Source: Orbicella franksi (taxonomy: Eukaryota). Taken from it: a DNA stretch of 64,000 nt. The stretch is taken from the NCBI GenBank assembly GCA_964199315.1, contig OZ116703.1, forward strand, positions 16,616,001-16,680,000, given 5' to 3'. The position numbers and the translations under genes are program-made. Shown in pieces: positions 1-52,542 of the stretch. Numbering within the stretch: the first letter of the stretch is position 1; every line of letters begins with the position of its first letter. The notes beneath the pieces are model-generated. The model saw only the letters and a program-made list of their open reading frames with translations. It was not told the DNA's origin and did no database searches.

Positions 1-1818
1 AAAATAAGAAAACAAATGAAGCTGTTAAAGCGAATGAAAGAAGTAATCAGACTTGCGTAGGTTGGTTTCAAAAGATGCCTTTGTTTGGTATGTTAATGCT
101 ACCGAAATCAAACTCTGATCAGTCTTCAAAATAGAGTAATAATTTGTTGGTTGTTTGCTGAAGCAATGGAAATCCTTCTATAATGAGCTGAAGTTCATAC
201 GAGCTATCAGTTACCAAATTGCTTTCATTTATGGTGCTAGCGTGTTCGTTAAAAGCCCTTTAGTTTTCAGCGAGTTTAGGAGGCAATTGGGCTTCACATA
301 AAGGATCAGTTTCGAGTGGCTTGGCTCAGATTTCGGCGACGAGTGCGGATTAAAGTGATTTTGAATAGTGTGTTTATTGCAACCTGTTCTTTTGTTTTGC
401 TTGACAGACTTGACAGATAACGTGGAATAACTAAGAAAATATTGTTGTTACCCGTGGAGCAAGTCGACTGTTGTGGACTTTTGAGAGATTCAGTGAAGAG
501 GAACTGATAAAAACCCATCAAATGCTGCGCTACGAGCCGATGGCTGTGGAACTCAGACTATCAATTAAGTGAATTCTGGAACAATTTTCAACTTGGCTGT
601 TGACCATCCTCAACAAACACACGAGGCAAGGGGATAAAAATATACATTTACTGTGTCCCTCATTTTACGTGATCCTCAACAACCTCCTTCAGTGTCACCG
701 AAGAGGTATTAACTTGTTCAAGTTAGAGGTATAAATTTTGAGAACGTTGAAATTCAAAAAGAACCCTTTTTTTTTTTTTACAAAGACTCCAAGTTTTATA
801 TGGAGACGTGAATGAAGATTTTCTCGAGAAGACAAAGACAGCGCCACGAGACAGGTCTTTTCAAAAAGGTGTGACTTTGGAGAGTATTCTTTGAGAATTA
901 AAATTTGATGAGCTGTATGTAAAAGATCAGCTTGATGAAACATTAATAAACCCTGCCTTGCAAAATCACCATTATTCACTTCGCTTGAGTGCCGAGATTT
1001 GTTTGCAAAAGGAAAAATAAATCCTTCTTTGCTTTCGTCTGAGAAAAGACGGAAAAGATGTAATTGGAAGAGTGAACCTTTCAGAAAATCGTCCTTTGAA
1101 ATTGCGCGTTCTATTTTACGGCAATGCCGATAAAATTCATCACCTTTTGTAAAGAGATTTATGCCGAACAGCTTGGAACAATTTAGATCCAATATTTTAA
1201 AAATCTCTGCTTTTTATCTTCCAAAATGAAGTAACTAATGTTACACTGTTAGAAATATTGTGTTGGCAAATACAATTTGTTACCTGTAAATTAGAATGCA
1301 CAAAGATTTATGGACAAACGGTGACGGCTAAAAACCCGCATTAGGTAATATTTCAGTGTACAGGAACAGAGATTTCAACAAGTCACGACAGAAAATTCTG
1401 AAAAAAATAACACTTGTTTACTGCTGTGGAATATTTCATATTGTCGGGGTGTTGTGTAGTTTCAGTAATATATTGAAGAATTCCACTTTGCTTCGAAGCT
1501 TTAGCTTTTAACAAAAGAGCAACTTCTAAGAAGCCAATGAAATGCGGCGGCTTTTCTTGGTCTTACTACCATGGCAACACAATGTTAGGTTCTGCAGCTC
1601 TCGAAATTATTTTTTGTCTCTTGACAAAAGGAAGAAATGAGTCCTTTGACACGCCTTGTCGGTATTGGCTGGCGGGTGTCTTTCACACCAGTCTCAATCA
1701 AGAGCTGCGGGCATTCAACACACAATTGGACAGCTTTGCAAACGCGTCCTCTATATTTGTAGCGAATTTACCAGTTAATTTAGTTTTGAGCAACGAACCT
1801 CGAACGCAACAACACGAC

Positions 1819-2044
1819 ATGGACCTGGTTCGACATCAATACGTTTACCCGCATCATCATCCGTATCGCCTGGGAGGTATGAGATATGGAGCCGTATCAC
1901 CTTATCAAGTGGTGACCATCCCCCGTTGCACCTGCGAGTGTTACTGCGAGAGGAATCGAGTGCAGTTTGTCGAAGGTGAATCTAGGAACTTGTCGGACCC
2001 CGCTAGAGAAGGACGAGGCAGGGATATGGATGACCTTAAAAACG
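1819..2044 (+). CDS. Divergent PRD-class (Uncx-like) homeobox gene 1, exon 1 of 3 (join 1819-2044,5235-5392,5941-6111; 184 aa)
   Basis: ATG at 1819 in the frame of ORF 1537-2142 (MDLVRHQYVYPHHHPY...DLKN). Phase-1 donor AACG|gtatgg joins in frame to the homeobox exon. The start codon is inferred. Confidence 0.75.
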
Positions 2045-4849
2045 GTATGGTCAGTTTCAAGCTACGTTGTACTATAACTGAGTTTCTTTCCTTTACATTA
2101 TCAGCGAATAAGCAATATAAATGTTTACCAAGTTCTCACTGAGAAGTTCTAAACGAGCCTTTTTGCGGGTTTTAAACATCCGGTTTTATCAAAACACGGT
2201 ATTTAACACGATTTAAACGATGATTACTGCAATTAGTAGGTTCATTTTCGGCCGGTCCAATATCGCTGATCTGGCTTTGTGTGATTTTGTGACTGAGAAA
2301 CGGCAATGAATTCAACTGAAGAACCGGTCCAAAATGGCAGTCTTCGCCTGATGAAATTTTGACTAAAACATTGAACAACACTGAATATTTGCGTCCTTGA
2401 TTTACTCAAGGAGTGGCTGCATTGAGTCAAAATATAGGTTTTTCGTGAAGAAACTTACTGTCAAAGCTTGCATTGCTAAGTTTCTTTAGGGCTCGAATAA
2501 ATCCAGAACTAACTTTCATTAGAGAAAATTCAAGTACCTAATTGTCTTCAAAGCACAAAAACAGTTGCCTTCTGTTGCAGAGGTTAATCTTTTCCACTTC
2601 GATATGGTTTTGTTTCGGAAATGTTTCGATTTCAATGAACAATAGTTCGGTAGCTTTAATAATGAACTTTGATTTCTGATCTCACTTAAGTACTTTTGTG
2701 ATCTCTCTTTTCCGGCTGATAAGAGGCTAATTTCAGATAAATTTAATCGAAAATTATTCCTCTTTTCTACCACTAATGCAAGAAGAGATTTACGCACTGA
2801 TATCAAAATTTGAATCGTATATTGGTTTTCCAGCACGCCTACGGCAAATGGGCAGACGTCCCGATATTTCACTAATAGTAAATGTTTTGTTATACATTTC
2901 ATAGTACAATCCTTCGTGGGCCATGAAACTTTATATCTTGGCATCGTAGTAACTCTCCTTTTTTTTTTAAATAAATAATTTTGTTTCTAATAATAAATGC
3001 TTATTAACGTATGCAGAATCGTTACAACTTAAAATATACAACATTTTCAAACACTTTCGTTCATAGATTGACTTTATTTCGCCCTTCACCCCCATAAAAC
3101 TTCAACTTTCAAGCAGTTCTTTTGTGTTGTAAACCAACTGACTTTGTCACTTCTTCGTCAGTTCTATTTCGCTGTTTTTCAAACAGGAGCGTCAAAACTG
3201 ATCGACTTGAATCAAACGCAGTAAATGTTTTTGACAATGGCCCGGCAAAAGCATCAATTAATTTACGGTATTCGTTTGAAATTCATTTACTAGCTGGCAC
3301 GCCAGAGAAAAAGGAGCGATCGAATGAAGCAGAAATATCAAGGAAGTCCTTTATTTGATATGAATCTCTTCCAATATGTCACTCTTTTACGGATCGATTT
3401 TGACATAAAATTCAAGGTAATTAACTTCCGATCGATACTTTGGTTGGACGATCTTTGTGCAGCTGTCAGCTTATGAAAACAGAAAACCCGCGCCCAACGA
3501 TCACCCTTGTTTTGAAGAATACACAAAAGCAAGTTTTTATATCAACCTTGATTCAAAAATTCACACCATCCAAGTATTTCTTAATTGCTTCATTAACGCT
3601 ATAAATGCAGCCTTCGGGCGGTAAAGATATTTCCCTTACGAGAAATTTGCGTCTAGGTATTATAATTGTAATGATCTACGCAAATTGGTCATTTAAAGCG
3701 AGGAGGTAACACTTAACCGAATAGTTGCGCTCAAAGGATTCTAGTTTTATAATAATATTCTTCTGATAAATCGTTATTCAGTTTTTCTCTTTCAATGTTG
3801 CGGTTTTCTGGCATAATACATATTTTTGAAAGCGAAATGAAAAAAAAAAAAAAAAAAAAAAAAACCCTGGCAAAGTGTAAAGCCATGCTATCCGAAGGCC
3901 AATCAATTTAATTTCGGATAAAATTCGAGATGATACCGAAAGTGTTTTTTTTTATTATTATCATTAAATTATCATTTATTTAACCGATTTTCAACTATTC
4001 ATTTTAGTTTCTTCATATTTTAACTATAAATTTGTTTTTCTCTGTGATACGCATTTATTTAGGATGCATAAAGCAATATTATTTTTAGTGAAATATTTGA
4101 TGTCAATCACGTTTTCGGCCAACCAAAGAATCCCACTTTTATTTGCCTTTCTCCATTTCATCCGGACAGTTTATTTCAGAGCTATGAAGACGCAAAAAGA
4201 AAGAAAGAAAGGACAGATTGAATGCTTGTTTGATTCTCTGGCTGTTTTACTAATCATTTTAAATCGTCTAATTAAATACAAGAAGACCTAGATGTATTTC
4301 TAATAATTGGCGATTTTTCCCTGTGCGCGGTTCAATAAATGAACAAAGGCTATAGTCTCGATCTTGATTGATTCCACTGTGAAATATTCTATGTCATAAT
4401 TTTATCGTGGCATGTCCAGAGACTGTGTTTTACCACCTTGAATACAGTATTAACACATACGTACAGGTGACCGCGGATTTAGCTATTCTGTTGACCTGTG
4501 TAAACTAGAGATGTCCAAAGATGCAAATAACGCCGCTTGCTAGTTAAACAGCGCCTCTGGGAGGGACTTCTTTATGTGAATTGGGTTCACAAACAACTTG
4601 CACCACTTGATTGACAGCTTACACGGTCGGTACCGTTGATCTCTCTTAGACCTTTCCTGATATGCTGTTAAGTGAAGTGTTGGCCAAGCTATCAAGGGTC
4701 CGGATATGTTGGAGTAGCGATAATGATGAAATTAAAACCAGAAATCAAAACCAAATCTCAGTTATGTCTCGAGTTCCGCCGTTAACTTGAATTTAAAGCT
4801 AACAAGTGAAGCATTATTGCCAGACAGTTTGCCACAATAAATCGCAAAC

Positions 4850-5740
4850 TGCATTTAACCCAAGTCCTCCAATGTCTTTTCAAAAATGTCATAGAAACAA
4901 ATTTGAATCTCTGGACTCTTGGGCTCAGCATTCATCGAAAGCTCTGCTCAGTAGCTTTCATTTAAATGGTGACACACTTAAAAGTTATGACCACCTTATA
5001 CACATGTTCACATGTTCCATATAGTGCTACCAGTTTTCATTTTTTGTGGTCACACAGTGAGATTGCAACCTCAGGAAGAAAACACGAGTGGTAGTGAAAA
5101 GATTAAATCCATTTATTTTAGATCCCATCTTAACCCTCGCTTTACTATATTGTTATAAGTCAACGCACTTCTCATTTTCTCTTCAACAAATTCATATGCG
5201 CTCCACTTATTTGTACCGTTTCAATTTTTTGCAGACTTTTGCCACGACAAAACAGGCAGGAGAAACCGAACCACTTACAAAAGATGGCAGATCGATGAAC
5301 TTGAAAGGGCGTTCTCTATTAATCCATACCCGACCAGTGTATATAAGAAGACTCTTGCACTAAGGCTGGGTCTTAGGGACTCGCGAGTTCAGGTGATAAA
5401 CTTTCACATATTTCAATTGAGGAGTCGAAGGAAGGGTTTCATTGCCAAAAACGAGCTTTTCACATGCCAAATGGGGTTGAATTCTACTCTAAGGAAACAA
5501 TACGGTAACAACGTCAAAATACTTCTCAATAGCTTACACTCGGGTTTCATACATGGACTCAAAAGTTACAACCAACTTGCACCACATGAAAGTACTGCTC
5601 AATAGTTTTTATTTGAATGGTCACACAAGAAAGTCCCTTCCACAGATTAAGATGATAAAACCGCCTCGGCAGCCAGCATATAAATAAACTGTACCATTAA
5701 AAATACTGCGCAATAGCTTTCGTTTGAATGTTCAGAAGGA
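4850..5740. repeat. Degenerate intronic repeat units flanking exon 2 of gene 1
   Basis: Core CTGCTCARTAGYTTTYATTTRAATGGTSACAC recurs at about 4944-4977, 5594-5626 and 5705-5734, and partially at 5521-5540. Confidence 0.6.
5235..5392 (+). CDS. Homeobox gene 1, exon 2 (homeodomain residues 1-46)
   Basis: Acceptor ttttttgcag| and donor GTTCAG|gtgata. Translates (D)FCHDKT-GRRNRTTYKRWQIDELERAFSINPYPTSVYKKTLALRLGLRDSRVQ. It is 158 nt, the same length as exon 2 of gene 2. The ORF track misses it. Confidence 0.9.
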
Positions 5741-5940
5741 TTTCAACATCAATGGACAACGGTCTTAAAGACTAAGACCACGTTGATTGCTAGGTATATG
5801 GTTGAACTCACTTTGGGGTGAAACAGGTCAATATACTTCAATGTTAATGTTTAAACCTAGAAATTAAGATGGTCTTACAGATACACAAAGTTTTAAGATT
5901 TTTTTTAAACTGATCTAAACTGATCTGACCGCTCTTTCAG

Positions 5941-6111
5941 GTTTGGTTTCAAAACCGTCGAGCAAAAGCAAAACGGGAAAGGCATGGCTCGACTGAATGT
6001 TACCCCAACGATACAGAGGCTGAACTCACGGAAGAGGAGCAGTCAGCCGACACAGAACATCCGGTTGATGTTGAAGAAAACAAAGAACTCGAACAAGTAG
6101 ATGTCGATTGA
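5941..6111 (+). CDS. Homeobox gene 1, exon 3 (helix 3 plus acidic tail)
   Basis: Acceptor ctctttcag|. Translates VWFQNRRAKAKRERHGSTECYPNDTEAELTEEEQSADTEHPVDVEENKELEQVDVD*. AATAAA at 6248-6253. Confidence 0.92.
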   Translation, partial: VWFQNRRAKAKRERHGSTECYPNDTEAELTEEEQSADTEHPVDVEENKELEQVDVD

Positions 6112-6399
6112 GTCTGTGGTTCTCTTTTACTGCATCTAAGACCAGGCTGAACTAGGTTTGAATCGAAGTGAATTTGTTATATCTTCGATTTAACAATACT
6201 GGGGCTTTGTCCTGTTTCAGAGAGTGAAGAATATTTCTACTGAAACAAATAAAAGTGGAGGAACTAGATGAGAACCCTCCTGGAGACGGTTAAAAATCTG
6301 CCACATTGCATCAATCTTGGCTTTATGAATAGTTCACAGACTTCTCATAGTGCTAATTTGTCAGCTACTAATAATAATACAACCAGATCATGATGAACG

Positions 6400-6890
6400 T
6401 GTTATGTATAGGAGGTCTGTATATGGGAGAATCTTGACCTCGGTCGTGAGTACAGACCGAACGCAGCGAGGTGTGAACATACGACCGAGGTCAAGATTCT
6501 CCCATACAGACCGACTAAGCTCGGTTAATAAGATCTTTATTATATGGCAACAAGAAAAATTTAATTCGTTTTATGTAACTGGTTTGTACTAACTGACACT
6601 TTGCTTGTGTTCAGCAATGAGCTGAATCTAATTCCGCCAAACTTCGCTCGTCCTGTTTACTTTTTTTTTCTCATCAGGCTTTTTGGGACTTCCATAAATA
6701 AATATTGTTTGAAGAAAATAGCCAATATTTTTGTATTTTAGTTTGCGACTTTTTTGCCGCAAAACATTACCGGTCTAGATGCCGATCTAGATGGGGAAAT
6801 CTAGACCGCTTTCAATATCCATTTCAGCCAATCAAATTCCTGAATTCGGTTGTTCCCAGTCCTTGTGAGACACAGTCGTATAATAAAAGT
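6400..6890. mobile_element. Non-autonomous interspersed element with a long internal inverted repeat
   Basis: Arms ggtctgt(at)atgggagaatcttgacctcggtcgt (6414-6447) and acgaccgaggtcaagattctcccatacagacc (6481-6512) are reverse complements apart from a 2-nt insertion. Outer limits are approximate. Confidence 0.6.
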
Positions 6891-6899
6891 TCTTTGTGC

Positions 6900-7067
6900 T
6901 TGATTGATGAACGTCATACTCATACTCACTCTGATTGGCTGAAGCATACGTCACACACGCGTTTCTTGAGCCCTTCATTCAGGTTGATTGATGAACGTCA
7001 TACTCATACTCACTCTGATTGGCTAGAGCATACGTCACACACGCGTTTCTTGAGCTCTTCATTCAGG
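6900..7067. repeat. Tandem duplication, 2 x 84 bp
   Basis: 6900-6983 and 6984-7067 are nearly identical, with about 3-4 substitutions. Confidence 0.95.
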
Positions 7068-8380
7068 GCGCTACCTTCTTCCGCCCTGCTGGTACATTAG
7101 TGCAAACAGTTTTGATTTGGACAACGCATAATTACTGACTTATTATTTTAAACTCTTTTGCATTTCATCTTTCTTCTCAAGTAGATTTACAAGCTCAGAG
7201 CACTCTTCCTAAGATCATGTGAAAGCAGTGTGTGTTTTCTTTTAATTTATCAGCGTTTTTCGACCGCGTTATTTATAGTACTGAAAAATGTAAGAAATAG
7301 GATTTGAGGCCTAGATGTATCATACTGTAAATAGAAATAAAGTATAACTGAACACATGCACATCTTTTGATGTCTCTTTTACTTGAAGAAAAATTCGCAA
7401 CCAACCAATCAGAATTTCTATTGCTGTCACTTTACTGTCAAGGAAAGACCCTTTTTCTCGTCGTGTCCGCCATCTTGGAACTGAGAACGAGGCTGCGAAA
7501 GTAAGTTTTCCCGCCAAACACAAGTGTGCTAAGCCACGTGCGTCTCTAGGCCCGCGGGAAACCCGCGTCACTTTTCGCAGCTGTCTGAACAAATCATCCT
7601 CGATAGAATTAAAAAACCAATAACATTCGACGCTCTTCTCGCTAAATTCACCGCTGGAGGAAAGAAGTATAGCATTAAATGGTAAGCTTACAAAATTTAT
7701 AATATAAAGCAGTTCAATTCAAGCTTAAATTATAAGCAGCTGATTTAGACTTACTGCTTTTATTGATCGACAAGAAACACATGTCTATACATTTCGTCTT
7801 GCGGAGAGCCTTGTTCGGCAATACGAAATTAAAGTCAGTAATAAGTCTACAGTGAATTTAGTTACGATAAATACTTAATTGACCTAATAGTGAAGTTTTG
7901 GGGTGCTTTAGCCACATATCAGTCTGTTTTTTCCTCGCCATACAGATTTCGACTCGACTGTAATTCACGAAAGGGCGAACCAACCGCGACCAAACTTGAA
8001 TAATTTGTCGCAGAAGCCGAACGAGCAAACGACAGTTTTGCGATTAGGTATGCTTTATGATAAAATTTACATAAAGTAGTCTATTTACATGATCTAATTC
8101 TTTGAAAGCCGAACGCACGAGTGAAATTGTGGTGTCATTTCCAATGCGGAGCTTGCAAGTGAACTAGCCATTTCAATGTTTTTTTCATAAATTTCCATCG
8201 ATACCATTTGGTAGAATATGGTTTTCAGTCAAGACTCGTGTTCTACTGTGATATCGATAACCAGCTGCAGGTCGTCAAATAATTCTTAGTCCTGTCTACT
8301 TGAATCAGTTGTTCTTAAAAGGTAAATACGTCAAGGACCTTTTTCATTTAGTTAACGCAGAAGTTTGCTTTGGTAGTGTG

Positions 8381-20565: not shown

Positions 20566-20728
20566 GTATGCATATTTTGAAAATACCTTTGTTTGTAAAG
20601 TCGCGCGTCTCGCACTACATGACTGTCCATACGCGCTCTCGCGGCCTCCTAGCATATCGGTGAACAAAGTTAACGGATAAATCTCTTTCTGTTCCTTTTT
20701 TTTGCTTCGATGCGATGCCATCCTGTAG

Positions 20729-20886
20729 AAATTCCTATCTTACCCAAGAAGCGAAGAAGCAGGACGAATTTCGACGCTTGGCAACTCGGCGAGCTTGAGA
20801 AGGTCTTCAGGAGAACACAGTATCCAGACGTATTCACGAGAGAAGCACTCGCCCTGAAGCTGGACTTACTCGAGTCAAGAGTTCAG
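20729..20886 (+). CDS. Uncx: Uncx gene 2, exon 2 (homeodomain 1-46)
   Basis: Acceptor cctgtag| and donor GTTCAG|gtgagg. [46 protein letters not shown] carries the unc-4 signatures RTNFxxWQL and REALALxLDL. Confidence 0.93.
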
Positions 20887-22699
20887 GTGAGGAGAAAACA
20901 AATGTCGCTAAAATATTCAAGCCACATTACTTGTGGCCCTTGTGTTATTGCTGGCCGGGCATATTGTTATTGTGTTTGCAGTCTTAGTTGTGGCTTCGCC
21001 AGCACAAGAACTTCAGAGCTCCATCAGATTTCCACCTTAATTTTCGTCCGTATTAGAATATCGGTACTTTTTCGTTTAGTAGTCGGGTTATGATGAGCTG
21101 TACAGATCTTTGGCTAGCATTTGGTTTGAAAACAAAGTTCGCACAATACAATTTGTAACAGATGCCGGACCGATAATTCTCTTAACACGTTTCGCAAGTT
21201 ACCTCAGTTATTTTTCACACTAGTCAACTGAACGATGAACAGACTCTTGAGCTTAGTGCAAAACTCTAAGACTTTCTTGGCCTAGAAACGCTCCTTTTTC
21301 TCAAAACAATACCCGGAATCGGCATTTCTCTTACCTTTCATTCTTTCTCAGTTCGTAATAGTCGGATAAGTCAAGCATTAGAAAGTTTTAGAACAGAAGG
21401 TTGATTTATGGTTGGGAACGAAGAGGACACCCAACTGAGATGGTTCCTGTCGTGTTCCTCGATTTACACACCTAATTGAATTTAGCCAGTTGTTACCAAC
21501 CACTTTTTGTCAATAGGCGATTAAATAATTCCTCTATTTGGCCATCTAAAGACAGTGTTCTACCACAGTTGCACGCCATGTTTCCGCCCAGAGCTTGCAG
21601 TAGAGTTTAAAATAAGCAGTGGAAGCCATTTTGTGATAGCGTTTCTGTTATCGCACAGAGCTCGTAATGGCGAAAATTTTACTGGCGACTCCAAGTCGCC
21701 AACAGCTTCCGTTTTGCGCGTCCGAGACACGGCTTCGTGCAGAGATTTCGTCTCGTTTTCCTTGAAATTTCAAGGCATAAACTTAAAAAACTAGTGCGAA
21801 AGGAAAGCAACGCAGCTACTAAATCGAGAAAACACTTTGCTGTAGATTCGAAGATGTGGTTTTATTTGTTCGTTAGTTGAGGGTGTGAGATTTAGCAGCA
21901 TACGTGTCTGAGATGGATGAGAATTTAAACCAGTTCCCACCTTGCCAGCTAATCAATAAATAAATTGTCTGTCGGGTTTCAAACTGTTTAAATTGTGCGA
22001 AGAATTTCTGAAGTTTGGTTTTGTGAAGTGCTTTTTGGTTTTAAAGGAATGTTTTTGGGGCGCGCTGGTTTAGAATCCGGCGTTTCGTTCATCTCCTTTA
22101 ACGCCTTTAAACGGTGTTAAAACCTTCATTGTTAAGCACTCTTTAGAAGCTCTAATTGACTAAGAAACCACAGTTCTCCGATGATTAATGCTGCTGCCGA
22201 TCTTCAAATATTTCTCGACCGTCCAACGCTGTAAGCATGCAAACAAATTGTAGTTAATGGCTTAGCCATTCACCTTTAAACAACAGCACTTCACACGCAA
22301 AACATAACAAAGTTGTGAGTGTGATATAATTTGCTTTATAGTAGGCCATGGTGGGAAACATTTTCCCTGCAAATGGCTCCTCTGATGGGAATTACTTCCT
22401 CAGTTTAACCTCGAAGGTTTTTGCTTGTCAAAGCATAATAAATTACTGTGAGTAGGGTCACGATTGATTAATGTGCTGTAGAAAGAGGAAGCCGTTACTT
22501 TTATCTCCTCGAGCGCATGTTAAGATTCTTGGTCTTATGTTTTTGCACATGGCCACATTTTTTGGCAGAAGTGGCTTAAGTTGAATACGATTAAGTTTGC
22601 TACCAAAAAAATGCTTAGAGTTTGGTTTGTACAATTGGATGTGTAAACACGTTTGAAGCGATGAAAACGTCGAGTTTTGTTTACATACGTTGTAAAGTT

Positions 22700-48781: not shown

Positions 48782-49043
48782 ATGATCATGGAAAGTAACT
48801 TACAAGGGCATCCTCATCCTACATTTTTTCAGTCGCCGTTCTACGCAATGGTTTCTCCCCGTGGACAGAACCTCTCTAACGCTGCCAATTTGCCGTACGC
48901 CACGGCCGATACTTGCTGCAGTGTTCCCAGCTACCTGCCGGCTGCCTATCACCACTCCTTCGCTGGTCGACCGTACGAAGTGCCTTGTGTGTATCACCCA
49001 GCCTCCTACGTAGATCCTCAGCTACAACTTGCGGCTTTTCAAG
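48782..49043 (+). CDS. Uncx: Uncx/unc-4 homeobox gene 3, exon 1 of 3 (join 48782-49043,50079-50257,52096-52542; 295 aa)
   Basis: ATG 48782 (or 48788). Pro/Tyr/His-rich N-terminus. Phase-1 donor CAAG|gtaaga. CCAAT at about 48488 upstream. Confidence 0.82.
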
Positions 49044-50078
49044 GTAAGAATAAATTTTACTTTTCAATCGCAAAATAATCACTTTTAAATCGCGTGAACC
49101 AATTTTAAGCTCGGAGTTTGTTTTGTGATTCATTTTGTCTTTGAGCTGACTCGCAACATTAAGTAATTGTTCGTGTCGCTAAAAATCGTATTAACTAATT
49201 TGTTCTTGACATTTTAGGGGCCGATAACACCGTGTCAAATTCTAGATGAACTCATGATTAGATAAAAAGACAGTGTAGAAACTAAACACGGTGATTTTTC
49301 ACTGGATTATCTTTGGCGATAACCGAGATTTGAGGATGAACTAAAAGATAACTGTAGCAAATTAAAGGTCGGCTTTGTTATCAAGATTTTCTTTCCGTTT
49401 TATTCTGCCTCTTGGTAACGAAAATATAAGAGAAATATTTCCCTAGCAAGCTAATACGTTAAACAAAACAGAAGCAAAAAATAATCTCAATATTGCTTTT
49501 CCCAATGTTATAAACAAGCGACGAAGAAATTAGCGTTCAGTTTACGTTCCCGAGGAAACGGTTTTCAGTTCAAAAATTAGGAAAATTTGTGGCGTCGCTT
49601 AAACAAATGCTTTTTTAAAAAAATTCAGAGTGTTGTTTAAGACAAATTTGTTAATTATGCGTGTCACGTATTTATGAATCCGAAATGACGAACACTATTT
49701 CACTTTTTGTTGAAATGTTTTTACGCTTAAGGACACGATTTCTACTCATAAATTGTATTTCCTGGATGAAAGCGCTAAACAAAGAAATAACACATCAAGA
49801 TATATTTTAGCCGTTATTATCTTCTTTGCACTTTAGAAGAATAACTTTCCTGGCTTTGGCTGAAAAGAAACAATGAATATTTTTTCCTGAGTATGTCTGG
49901 TTGATAACGGAAAAACAAAGTGGGGAATACTGCAATTTTCCTTTCACATGTTACTGACAAATCAGAAAAAAAAGAACATTCCTAGCTTTTCATTCGTCAC
50001 ACCCTAAAATAAAGAAGTTGATTGAAAGAAGAGCAACCAGTGTTAATGAAGTCACTTGTAATTTTATTCTGCCCACAG

Positions 50079-50257
50079 GCCAGAGATTCTTAGATCATTT
50101 ACGCCCTCACAAGCCCCGAAGAATGCGAGTTCGAACAAACTTCAGCCCGTGGCAACTAGAGCAGCTCGAACGCGCGTTTGAGACGACCCATTATCCTGAT
50201 GTTTTCATGCGCGAGGCTCTTGCCCTGAGATTAGACCTCACGGAAGCCAGAGTCCAG
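50079..50257 (+). CDS. Uncx: Uncx gene 3, exon 2 (homeodomain 1-46)
   Basis: Acceptor gcccacag| and donor GTCCAG|gtacaa. [46 protein letters not shown] is close to the UNC-4/Uncx consensus. Confidence 0.95.
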
Positions 50258-52095
50258 GTACAACTTATGTTTCTTCACCTTCTACAAAACACGATTTACT
50301 TCTGGGTTTGCTTTTTCGTCTCTGCTCTTCCAGTTCTTTTTGATGCTAAACACACCCTCAGGTTTACTTCGAATATTGTTTTGAACGTAAGAATCTGATG
50401 CAAGAGATCCAGGCCGACAGACACAAGAAAAACAATTTCCTTCTGGATAGGAGTTTTCCTTTTCTTTGTTCTATATACGTGTATGTTCTACAAAAAAAAA
50501 AATATGTTTTAAAGTTGGTCAGTTCATAATCTACAAGTTTGCGCAATTATTACCTCCTGTTCACGACTCATTCCTGCTCTGTCATACATCGCAGCTTTAC
50601 CTCCCACGTGAAGCAGCTGAGTTTCACACACGAAATAAAACATTTATTCAAACTGTTTCTTATTTGTCTTCTAAACCTCGCTCGCGAGACCCTGATTTCA
50701 GAATTAAATCCAGAGAAAAAGAAAAACAGAACAAGTTATAAGAGTCATTCAATAACACATCCTTTTTTACAAAACTTTCCAAGTCTATTCAGACATAAAG
50801 AGTCGTACCGTAATATCGAACAAATTTAGTACGAGAAACAAAAAAGTGTTTCTCGGTCGAAAGGTTAAGGAAAAAGGTATACAGTTGTTTCCTAATTTTG
50901 ACGTTGTGTCACTTAGTATCTGTTTCACTGTGTTAACCTGTTATCCTGATATTTAGACACGTTATCCGTTAATTCCCTTTTCGCTTACATTAATAGATGA
51001 CAGGTGGGAGGGTAGTAACTAGCCAATGAAACCCGCCAACCAAAGCAAAGCGGAAAGCCCTGACTAATTCGATTGAACTAGGAACACATTGTCTTCTCTT
51101 TGGAAGCTCCGTCTCACTAAAAACAAAATAAATCAAACACGAAAATCTAAAACATCGAAATCACCAAACACATGAGAACATTTATCATTAATCAATGTTA
51201 TCGACCACGATAGCGTTCGTCTTTCTTTAATGGTTGGCACGAGCGACGATTTTTTAAAGAAAGAAGCAATTATTTTCCCCCCTCGAGGATGCGATCTTTG
51301 TTTGTAACGAACGTTATTGTTTTGGCTGAATATTTATCGCCACACTTGGTTCTTTTCTTCTCTGTTTCAAAATTCAAAGCGTGCTATACCGCGTTCTTCC
51401 TCCTTTATTTTCCTTTAATTGGAAATTTTTTAATCAAAGGAATCGAAATAAAAGTACCAAATGTTACTCTCCCATCTGCAATGTGCTTTCAGACTCCAAA
51501 CCTCCGGTAAAACTGCTCGGCAGATCGAGTAGTTTCAATTCGTCGTTTTGTATTTTCCGCAGTTACTATCAACAGTTACATTAGAAAAACAGAAACGGGT
51601 AAATGTTATCTAAACCAAAATTGACAATAGTTGAGTTAAAATGCAAATTTTCATGTTCAACTGATCATTCAAGTGTCGCTGTGTATTGTTCAATTCCACA
51701 GCGGCCATTTACTTGGAAGAAAGGAAAAATTGCTATCTAACATTTTATTTATCCCATGTTGGCACATAAACATCCTGAAAGCGTCAATTTTGACTTCACT
51801 TGTTGTATAAAAAGGTCTTTTACTTGAGAGGTAAACAAATTTTCAGTTATTCGCTGTCTCATAATGCCAACGCAAAAAAAGTTTAAAGATCATTGTTGAA
51901 ATTTGCAATGAAATGTCTCTCCAAACATTCAAAAAGACCAGTCGCTTTCGTTTTATTAATTGCGATAAATATAATAAAGGTTATTGTATAATACCACATG
52001 CCGCACAAATCTTACTGCGAGAAAACAATGCTTTTAAGGTGGTTTTTTCAGACAGTAAAGTGTCTTTAAACTGACTCCTTGTTGCATTTTCTCAG

Positions 52096-52542
52096 GTATG
52101 GTTTCAGAACCGTCGAGCAAAATGGCGGAAGCGGGAGAAAGCGAAAGATGGTGAAGATGGGCAGAAAGATTCAGATAACAACGAGGAAACGGAGGCGAAT
52201 CAAGAAAAGAGGGAAACGGACGGAGAAGAACGAGAATTGAGCGGCGATATGGTAATTAAAAGAGAAAAAGACAGCGTGGAACACGAAGGACAAGATACAG
52301 GAAATGGAGAGAAATCGGAGGACGAATATCGTCAGGAAGATACGCGAAAGCCAGTGAAGGAAGAATTCCCAGCGCAGTGTGGGCGTTTTAAGGGATGCGC
52401 GGGTCATGCGTACAGCGACAAAGAACACAGTTCAAGAGATTTCGATTATTTTGAGAAGATAAGAACATCAAGCATCGCTGCTCTCCGACGAAGAGCAAAG
52501 GAACACGAAGTACTTCTCACGTCACAGAACTCTGTGATTTGA
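52096..52542 (+). CDS. Uncx: Uncx gene 3, exon 3 (helix 3, acidic linker, OAR motif)
   Basis: Acceptor ttttctcag|. VWFQNRRAKWRKREK..., with RTSSIAALRRRAKEH at 52462-52506. In frame with ORF 52237-52542. Confidence 0.94.
   Translation, partial: VWFQNRRAKWRKREKAKDGEDGQKDSDNNEETEANQEKRETDGEERELSGDMVIKREKDSVEHEGQDTGNGEKSEDEYRQEDTRKPVKEEFPAQCGRFKGCAGHAYSDKEHSSRDFDYFEKIRTSSIAALRRRAKEHEVLLTSQNSVI

Follow-up and report, generated by a model that had tools for sequence, protein, structure and literature searches.

Gene 1, the first of three + strand homeobox genes (gene 1, gene 2, and gene 3) in the 64,000-nucleotide (nt) window of Orbicella franksi DNA whose numbering we use throughout, is best explained as a coral ortholog within an old family of paired-like Q50 homeodomain (HD) transcription factors, one that originated in tandem from Uncx, passed through an early burst of change, and then settled into stasis. 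We put the probability of this explanation at about 0.8. The sequences compared indicate that its HD is under strong purifying selection and has stayed nearly unchanged since the coral-anemone split, and the family extends throughout Hexacorallia and probably, beyond them, throughout Anthozoa. A first-pass annotation of the same DNA had described gene 1 as a fast-diverging Uncx paralog, a possible cnidarian parallel to Drosophila OdsH. Our analysis removes that cnidarian OdsH story, and it is a reminder that an HD that looks divergent within a single genome says nothing about its current tempo of evolution. Gene 1 would instead be an example of burst followed by stasis after duplication, with about 21 family-specific HD residues fixed since before corals and anemones separated.

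Conservation of the gene 1 homeodomain

Gene 1 looked divergent because the best match to its second exon in its own genome is just 45 to 48% identical; its HD is 50 to 53% identical to those of its tandem neighbors. When 1.84 billion representatives of 50%-identity clusters were searched exhaustively by phmmer with exon 2 as the query, nine separate clusters proved 80 to 96% identical to it, and the next single-HD matches stand at about 55%. Full-length orthologs come from scleractinians of the complex clade (Acropora, Montipora, and Porites) and of the robust clade (Desmophyllum, Oculina, Stylophora, and Pocillopora) and from the sea anemones Actinia, Actinostola, and Nematostella, and a metagenomic ortholog (P0011) is also among the relatives. 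The window protein is 88.6% identical to that of Oculina, 85.3% to that of Desmophyllum, 71 to 80% to those of Porites, Stylophora, Acropora, and Montipora, and about 48.5% to those of the anemones, with conservation spanning the whole length among corals.

The HD of gene 1 reads GRRNRTTYKRWQIDELERAFSINPYPTSVYKKTLALRLGLRDSRVQ|VWFQNRRAKAKRER, where the bar marks an intron between HD positions 46 and 47 (Q46|V47). The first-pass annotation had seen an intact helix 3 (VWFQNRRAK) beside a heavily changed N-terminal arm and helices 1 and 2, and its observations hold: Y8, the altered helix 1-2 stretch (S21-T33, SINPYPTSVYKKT), K31, and D42 are all in place, together with W11 and Q50. These residues are shared far beyond Orbicella. 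HD identity to the window is 56 to 58 of 60 positions in other scleractinians, both major clades included, and 52 to 54 of 60 in the three anemones; 49 of the 60 positions are invariant across ten hexacorals, and at 21 of these the family has a residue found neither in gene 2 or gene 3 nor in vertebrate Uncx. K31 and D42, fixed in ten of ten hexacoral orthologs, are by this alignment old fixed states. The states in the window that are unlike most other corals are I22, shared with two anemones, and Y30, found in the window alone. Over the coral-anemone distance the gene 1 HD has changed less than that of gene 2 (49 to 50 of 60 identical) and more than that of gene 3 (58 to 59 of 60).

We worked from exact coding sequences at five ortholog loci (Desmophyllum, Stylophora, Porites, Nematostella, and Actinostola) and estimated ratios of nonsynonymous to synonymous substitution (dN/dS) by the Nei-Gojobori method (NG86) among four corals, a set that excludes gene 1 of Oculina, Acropora, Montipora, and Actinia. 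The ratio is 0.05 to 0.11 for the whole gene, 0.006 to 0.023 for the HD, 0.08 to 0.17 for the N-terminal part, and 0.13 to 0.19 for the acidic tail, which is conserved among scleractinians; coral dS runs from 0.8 to 2.6 with some pairs saturated, so that these values are approximate, which counts against our explanation, but their direction is unambiguous.

These data bear directly on whether gene 1 is a recent and rapid Uncx duplicate like OdsH, possibly under positive selection and acting in the germline or early embryo. The likeness is real in that OdsH is also a tandem relative of unc-4/Uncx with an HD unlike the parental type, and a gene whose HD is so far from its tandem neighbors while helix 3 is intact does look fast when no other species is considered. 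OdsH, however, is a young gene with an HD that changes rapidly from one sibling species to the next. The "divergent" residues of gene 1 are fixed in ten hexacorals, three anemones among them; the cluster in which it sits is older than the coral-anemone split; the HD differs from those of other corals at just two to three positions, which argues against a recent burst in this lineage; and the raised nonsynonymous rate of an OdsH-type HD was not found among the four scleractinians. OdsH also keeps the unc-4 helix-2 signature SHYPDIFMREALA (PMC1779571 supplement), whereas coral gene 1 lost that signature long ago. The fast-diverging, OdsH-like reading is refuted because strong conservation of the HD across Anthozoa, the outcome that the annotation had itself set against its proposal, is what we found, and we regard a recent origin as highly improbable.

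Affinity to Uncx and the age of the cluster

The helix-3 exons of the three genes begin at 5941, ~23126, and ~52096, each preceded by an exon for HD positions 1 to 46. Gene 2 (+) is Uncx-like, with HD exons near 20.7 and 23.1 kb (20710-20889 and from ~23126); the second part of its HD, from position 47 on, is VWFQNRRAKLRREE, and its orthologs in Actinostola, Actinia, and Nematostella are clear. Gene 3 (~48821-52530, +), with HD exons near 50.1 and 52.1 kb, is the canonical Uncx, with an HD that matches that of Oculina at every position; its orthologs carry an OAR domain (PF03826). An ADSL_C exon lies after gene 3, 10.9 kb beyond the end of the window (G000:C6:16690877-16691062). In Actinostola, gene 1 (+), gene 2 (+), and gene 3 (-) occupy one contig within about 21 kb; in Actinia, ADSL, gene 3, and gene 2 lie together, and the contig recorded for gene 1 has the same length as theirs and is probably the same one. 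Gene 3 is inverted in the anemones relative to the coral. The cluster of gene 1, gene 2, and canonical Uncx beside ADSL predates the coral-anemone split, and its arrangement supports an Uncx affinity independently of sequence likeness and trees.

By class, gene 1 is a paired (PRD)-class gene of the paired-like Q50 type, with an intron at HD position 46/47 that is used in RNA, Q50, and no paired box; Ryan et al. 2006 (PMC1779571) report such an intron, typical of the class, for 31 of the 33 PRD genes of Nematostella. With Uncx/unc-4, as represented by gene 3, Nematostella UNC4 (NVHD059), and vertebrate Uncx4.1, it shares the Q50 paired-like HD and the 46/47 intron, W11-Q12, L34-A35-L36-R37-L38, S43-R44-V45-Q46, and identical base-contacting residues in helix 3, as well as its tandem position with two Uncx-type genes beside ADSL in both the coral and Actinostola. 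The residues diagnostic of Uncx are F8, W11, (S/T)HYPD(V/I)FMREALA, and RLDL; gene 1 keeps W11 and L34 to L38 and has replaced F8, H24, D27, V28, M30, R31, E32, D39, and E42. The differences are considerable. HD identity to Uncx is only 30 to 32 of 60, with Y8 for F8, NPYPTS-x-x-KK for (S/T)HYPDVFMRE, A56-K57 for W56-R57, and distinct residues at G39, R41, and D42; the protein has 184 residues against 270 to 289; its N-terminal region is unrelated and bears the motif CTCECYC; and OAR, annotated in gene 3 orthologs, is absent from all gene 1 orthologs.

Further evidence on affinity comes from similarity searches and trees. A search with the part of the HD that has diverged most gave a top 150 in which 9 matches belong to the gene 1 family and 100 carry W11, and 80 of those 100 have the full unc-4/Uncx helix-2 signature; the rest are mostly multi-HD proteins with summed scores. 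In the coral's own genome, W11 was found in the three cluster genes only among the paired-like exons inspected. In maximum-likelihood trees of 60-column HDs, the gene 1 family is a clade with 100/100 support, on a stem of 1.1 to 1.9 changes per site with internal branches of at most 0.17. Its placement on the side of the Uncx-type HDs has modest support (89/53 and 80/98), in a tree whose outgroups, drawn from a search seeded with the gene 1 family, are biased towards Uncx-like HDs. The annotation's view of gene 1 as a neofunctionalized Uncx duplicate survives in part: the tandem position beside two Uncx-type genes and the Uncx/unc-4 identity of the nearest outside relatives speak for the derivation, while recency and speed fall away. 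Given the missing OAR and the acidic tail, an old neofunctionalized relative of Uncx is a fair description of the gene.

An unlikely alternative is that gene 1 belongs to a separate old PRD-class family that merely adjoins Uncx, whether as a remnant of an ancient PRD array or as kin of the Siamois/DUX type. G1-R2-R3 and N23-P24-Y25-P26 are shared with DUX4/Siamois-type HDs, the latter with the first HD of DUX4, and UniRef labels several orthologs "Homeobox protein siamois." DUX4 HD1, however, is identical to gene 1 at only 23 of 59 positions, compared with 30 to 32 of 60 for Uncx-type HDs; DUX4 has a double HD and gene 1 a single one; and in the tree the DUX4 HDs, despite their NPYP, take a separate position with the non-W11 PRD HDs. 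We best read the common NPYP as convergence. The modest support for the Uncx-type node and the lack of any similarity to gene 3 outside the HD also speak for a separate family, as do the mutually inconsistent automatic names of the orthologs (Vsx1, Hox-C8-like, Hox-D8-like, siamois, unc-4, and Phox2B-like) and a published table that counts only two Uncx genes in Nematostella and in Acropora (Hamada et al. 2020, PMC7642931). Set against these are W11 and A35-L36-R37-L38, common to gene 1 and Uncx, the unc-4/Uncx identity of the best single-HD matches among 1.84 billion proteins, and a tandem with two Uncx-type genes that is kept in the anemone Actinostola.

The reach of the family beyond hexacorals depends on a protein of the octocoral Dendronephthya gigantea (XP_028395640.1, P0094), which shares T7-Y8-R9-R10-W11-Q12-V13-D14, N23, Y25-P26, and K31, and with them the gene 1-type signature TY(K/R)RWQ(I/V)D plus K31. 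Tree support for its grouping with the gene 1 family is 100/100, and its terminal branch measures 1.26. It is much more diverged and lacks CTCECYC, having a cysteine-rich N terminus (TTCCLNWEDCRMCD) of its own. A search for its relatives at E<=1e-8 returned only the protein itself, at a threshold probably too strict for HD-only matches. An Anthozoa-wide origin of the family with stasis specific to hexacorals would fit these sequences and is probable only, since two long branches are involved.

Several further observations weigh against derivation from Uncx and subsequent stasis. In Nematostella, neither gene 2 nor gene 3 lies within 10 kb of the gene 1 ortholog, whose neighbors are Snf7 and Methyltransf_16. 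A profile-profile comparison (hhalign) of the gene 1 and gene 3 N-terminal regions found no similarity (E 0.48). The Uncx derivation itself draws on linkage, signature residues, and weakly supported nodes of a 60-column tree. At the transcript level, the poly(A) raw-read run X22 (12% of the run read) has no reads on gene 1 exons, and an RNA contig from run X20 lacks 1 nt at 6043, which would put the acidic tail out of frame.

With these points taken into account, a tandem duplication of Uncx that preceded the coral-anemone split is the most likely origin of the gene 1 family. A single early burst would have remodeled the N-terminal arm and helices 1 and 2 (Y8, K9-R10, NPYPTS, K31-K32, G39, and R41-D42), after which strong purifying selection would have held gene 1 almost unchanged.

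We found no description of the gene 1 family in the literature searched, and one may exist elsewhere; a search for papers combining "Homeobox protein siamois" with coral found none. The Nematostella catalog of Ryan et al. 2006 (PMC1779571) gives a single UNC4 gene, NVHD059, and it is of the gene 3 type. The readable parts of the supplements contain a Nematostella sequence of the gene 2 type and no strings of the gene 1 ortholog, which does not imply its absence from the catalog. NVHD088 is a different gene. He et al. have tied the Uncx program to segment polarity in Nematostella. Because the ortholog names are inconsistent and the published count stands at two Uncx genes, work on Uncx (He et al., 2023) may overlook a linked paralog that could share its binding sites.

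Predicted DNA binding and partners, and conserved parts outside the homeodomain

For the Oculina ortholog, which matches the window protein at 89% identity, AlphaFold2 modeling predicts a normal three-helix HD (HD 10-22, 28-38, and 42-61, with predicted local distance difference test [pLDDT] scores of 93 to 97) and disorder in the N-terminal part and the tail (pLDDT below 50). Pfam assigns the Homeodomain family PF00046 to exon 2 with an E value of 4.1e-11 (43 bits against a cutoff of 22.9), and exon 3 covers profile positions 46 to 57. Neither OAR nor any other Pfam family was found in exons 1 and 3, and there is no other domain such as a paired box. The 42-residue tail contains 16 D/E and 3 K/R/H; the first-pass annotation was right on both the absent OAR and the acidic count.

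Because the residues that normally contact bases match those of Uncx (R2, R3, R5, V47, Q50, N51, A54, and K55), the gene 1 protein would be expected to recognize TAAT-type Q50 sites in an Uncx-like manner. Most of the fixed residues peculiar to the family are set apart from the helix-3 base contacts and occupy the N-terminal arm, helices 1 and 2, the loops, and the first part of helix 3. The N-terminal arm, helix 1-2, and loop region of an HD carries backbone contacts and protein-protein surfaces. Gene 1 would thus likely have a set of partners or cofactors, and a transcriptional output, unlike those of its Uncx neighbors, whether as an activator or as a repressor, with CTCECYC and the acidic tail as candidate conserved effector parts. 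On sequence grounds, we best read gene 1 as an Uncx relative that would use the same sites but differ in its partners and output. A more elaborate proposal, which we consider a long shot, would make gene 1 a third Uncx-derived transcription factor on the Q50 sites of Uncx, one that uses its CxCxCxC motif for metal- or redox-dependent dimerization or partner switching and modulates the Uncx program as a competitor or cofactor; the surface outside the base-contacting face of helix 3 would then have been rebuilt once and frozen.

The cysteine motif (C37-T-C-E-C-Y-C43) is encoded at 1927-1947 (+) in exon 1. In Oculina numbering, C38, T39, C40, E41, C42, and C44 are invariant in nine coral and anemone orthologs, Nematostella included, and the motif falls within the stretch that AlphaFold2 predicts to be disordered. 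Elsewhere in this N-terminal region, YxY..HPYR and AVSPYQVV stretches are kept among orthologs. A PDB profile search with the N-terminal alignment returned nothing (best E 9.6), and the N-terminal 82 residues scored no better than 0.80, which is chance level, in an ESM Atlas feature search. A complex prediction of two copies of those 82 residues with Zn scored 0.02 and speaks neither for nor against dimerization. MTF-1 offers an analogy only: it, too, is a transcription factor with a short alternating-cysteine run outside the DNA-binding domain, but it has no sequence homology to gene 1, and its motif is C-terminal where that of gene 1 is N-terminal. Cu binding by the MTF-1 cluster has been reported, as has a requirement for the cluster in activation and homodimerization (reviewed in PMC11503025, citing Gunther 2012 and Chen 2008).

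The transcribed 5' leader (1541-1818, +), in which other corals have in-frame stops that mark it as noncoding, is the second conserved element. Between the window and Desmophyllum, Stylophora, and Porites its mean column identity is 79%, and across robust and complex corals the ~250 nt upstream of the start are far better kept than synonymous sites in the coding sequence. Long invariant runs include CGGTATTGGCTG, CACACAATTG, CAGCTTTG, and CCTCTATATTTGTA. There is a short upstream open reading frame (ORF) at CCATGGCAAC (1571), in the context CCATGG(C/A/T)AAC, and there are TAAT-type motifs, one of which is CAATTAAG in other corals and CAATCAAG in the window. The leader may be a translational or autoregulatory element, and together with CTCECYC it provides a concrete experimental handle. 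An in-frame ATG at 1537 with no stop before 1819, present in Orbicella franksi only, would permit a possible N-terminal extension of 94 residues. The conserved start is ATG 1819, because Desmophyllum, Stylophora, and Porites have stops in the upstream frame (1537-1818 stretch).

Transcripts, splicing, and minor features

The coding sequence of gene 1 (+) joins 1819-2044, 5235-5392, and 5941-6111 into an ORF of 555 nt, that is, 184 codons plus TGA. Exon 1 (1819-2044) encodes residues 1 to 75 and the first base of codon 76. Intron 1 (2045-5234) is in phase 1; exon 2 (5235-5392) encodes a linker and then HD positions 1 to 46 (5255-5392). Intron 2 (5393-5940) separates HD positions 46 and 47, and the coding part of exon 3 (5941-6111) encodes HD 47 to 60 (5941-5982), the acidic tail (5983-6108), and TGA (6109-6111). 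The 3' untranslated region (UTR) extends from 6112 to at least 6386.

Both introns are GT..AG, and both junctions are used in RNA, in agreement with the first-pass annotation of an intact ORF with intact splice sites; gene 1 is a genuine gene and is expressed. The spliced evidence consists of Logan contigs from two RNA runs of different studies, one of them poly(A) selected: X15 record 1 (1,108 nt) and poly(A) X20 record 15 (860 nt). Their blocks cover 1541/1788-2043, 5234-5387, and 5936-6386/6379, with X15 beginning at 1541 and reaching 6386 and X20 reaching 6379. The joints 2043>5234 (cut +1), present in both, and 5387>5936 (cut +5) resolve to the GT..AG junctions 2044|5235 and 5392|5941, exactly the predicted splicing. 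Exon 3 and the 3' UTR (5941-6386) were found in 13 RNA runs from many studies, and nothing in these runs, whose sample tissues and stages are coded, points to restriction to germline or embryo. Low-depth coverage of the introns in a random-primed library stems from either pre-mRNA or DNA carryover.

Desmophyllum, Stylophora, Porites, and Nematostella all share the three-exon plan with its phase 1 and HD-46/47 introns. A fourth exon in the Actinostola model is probably an artifact of gene prediction. That gene 1 might be a decaying or silent pseudogene with a frame left open by chance could be argued from the 1-nt tail deletion in one RNA contig and from the single poly(A) run lacking exon reads. 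An ORF that is intact in the window and in at least ten other species, a conserved gene structure, a whole-gene dN/dS of about 0.1 or lower with no part above 0.19, and correctly spliced transcripts in several studies leave that idea next to no credibility, and we reject it on conservation and transcripts.

The deletion at 6043 in X20 (poly(A), depth ~8) would turn the last 22 tail residues into an unrelated basic peptide. All sampled words at 6043 are present in DNA runs with the same organism label as X20, and the deletion represents an allelic variant or an error of assembly. X15 carries a G>A change at 6100 (D182N).

Pfam matched nothing in the long ORFs at 695-1192 (-), 2519-2944 (-), and 6705-7100 (+). 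The segments 5468-5661, in intron 2, and 6438-7000, just 3' of the gene, reach depths of hundreds to thousands in all RNA libraries and show numerous loose ends and back-joints. Both are interspersed repeats and lie outside the gene 1 transcript.

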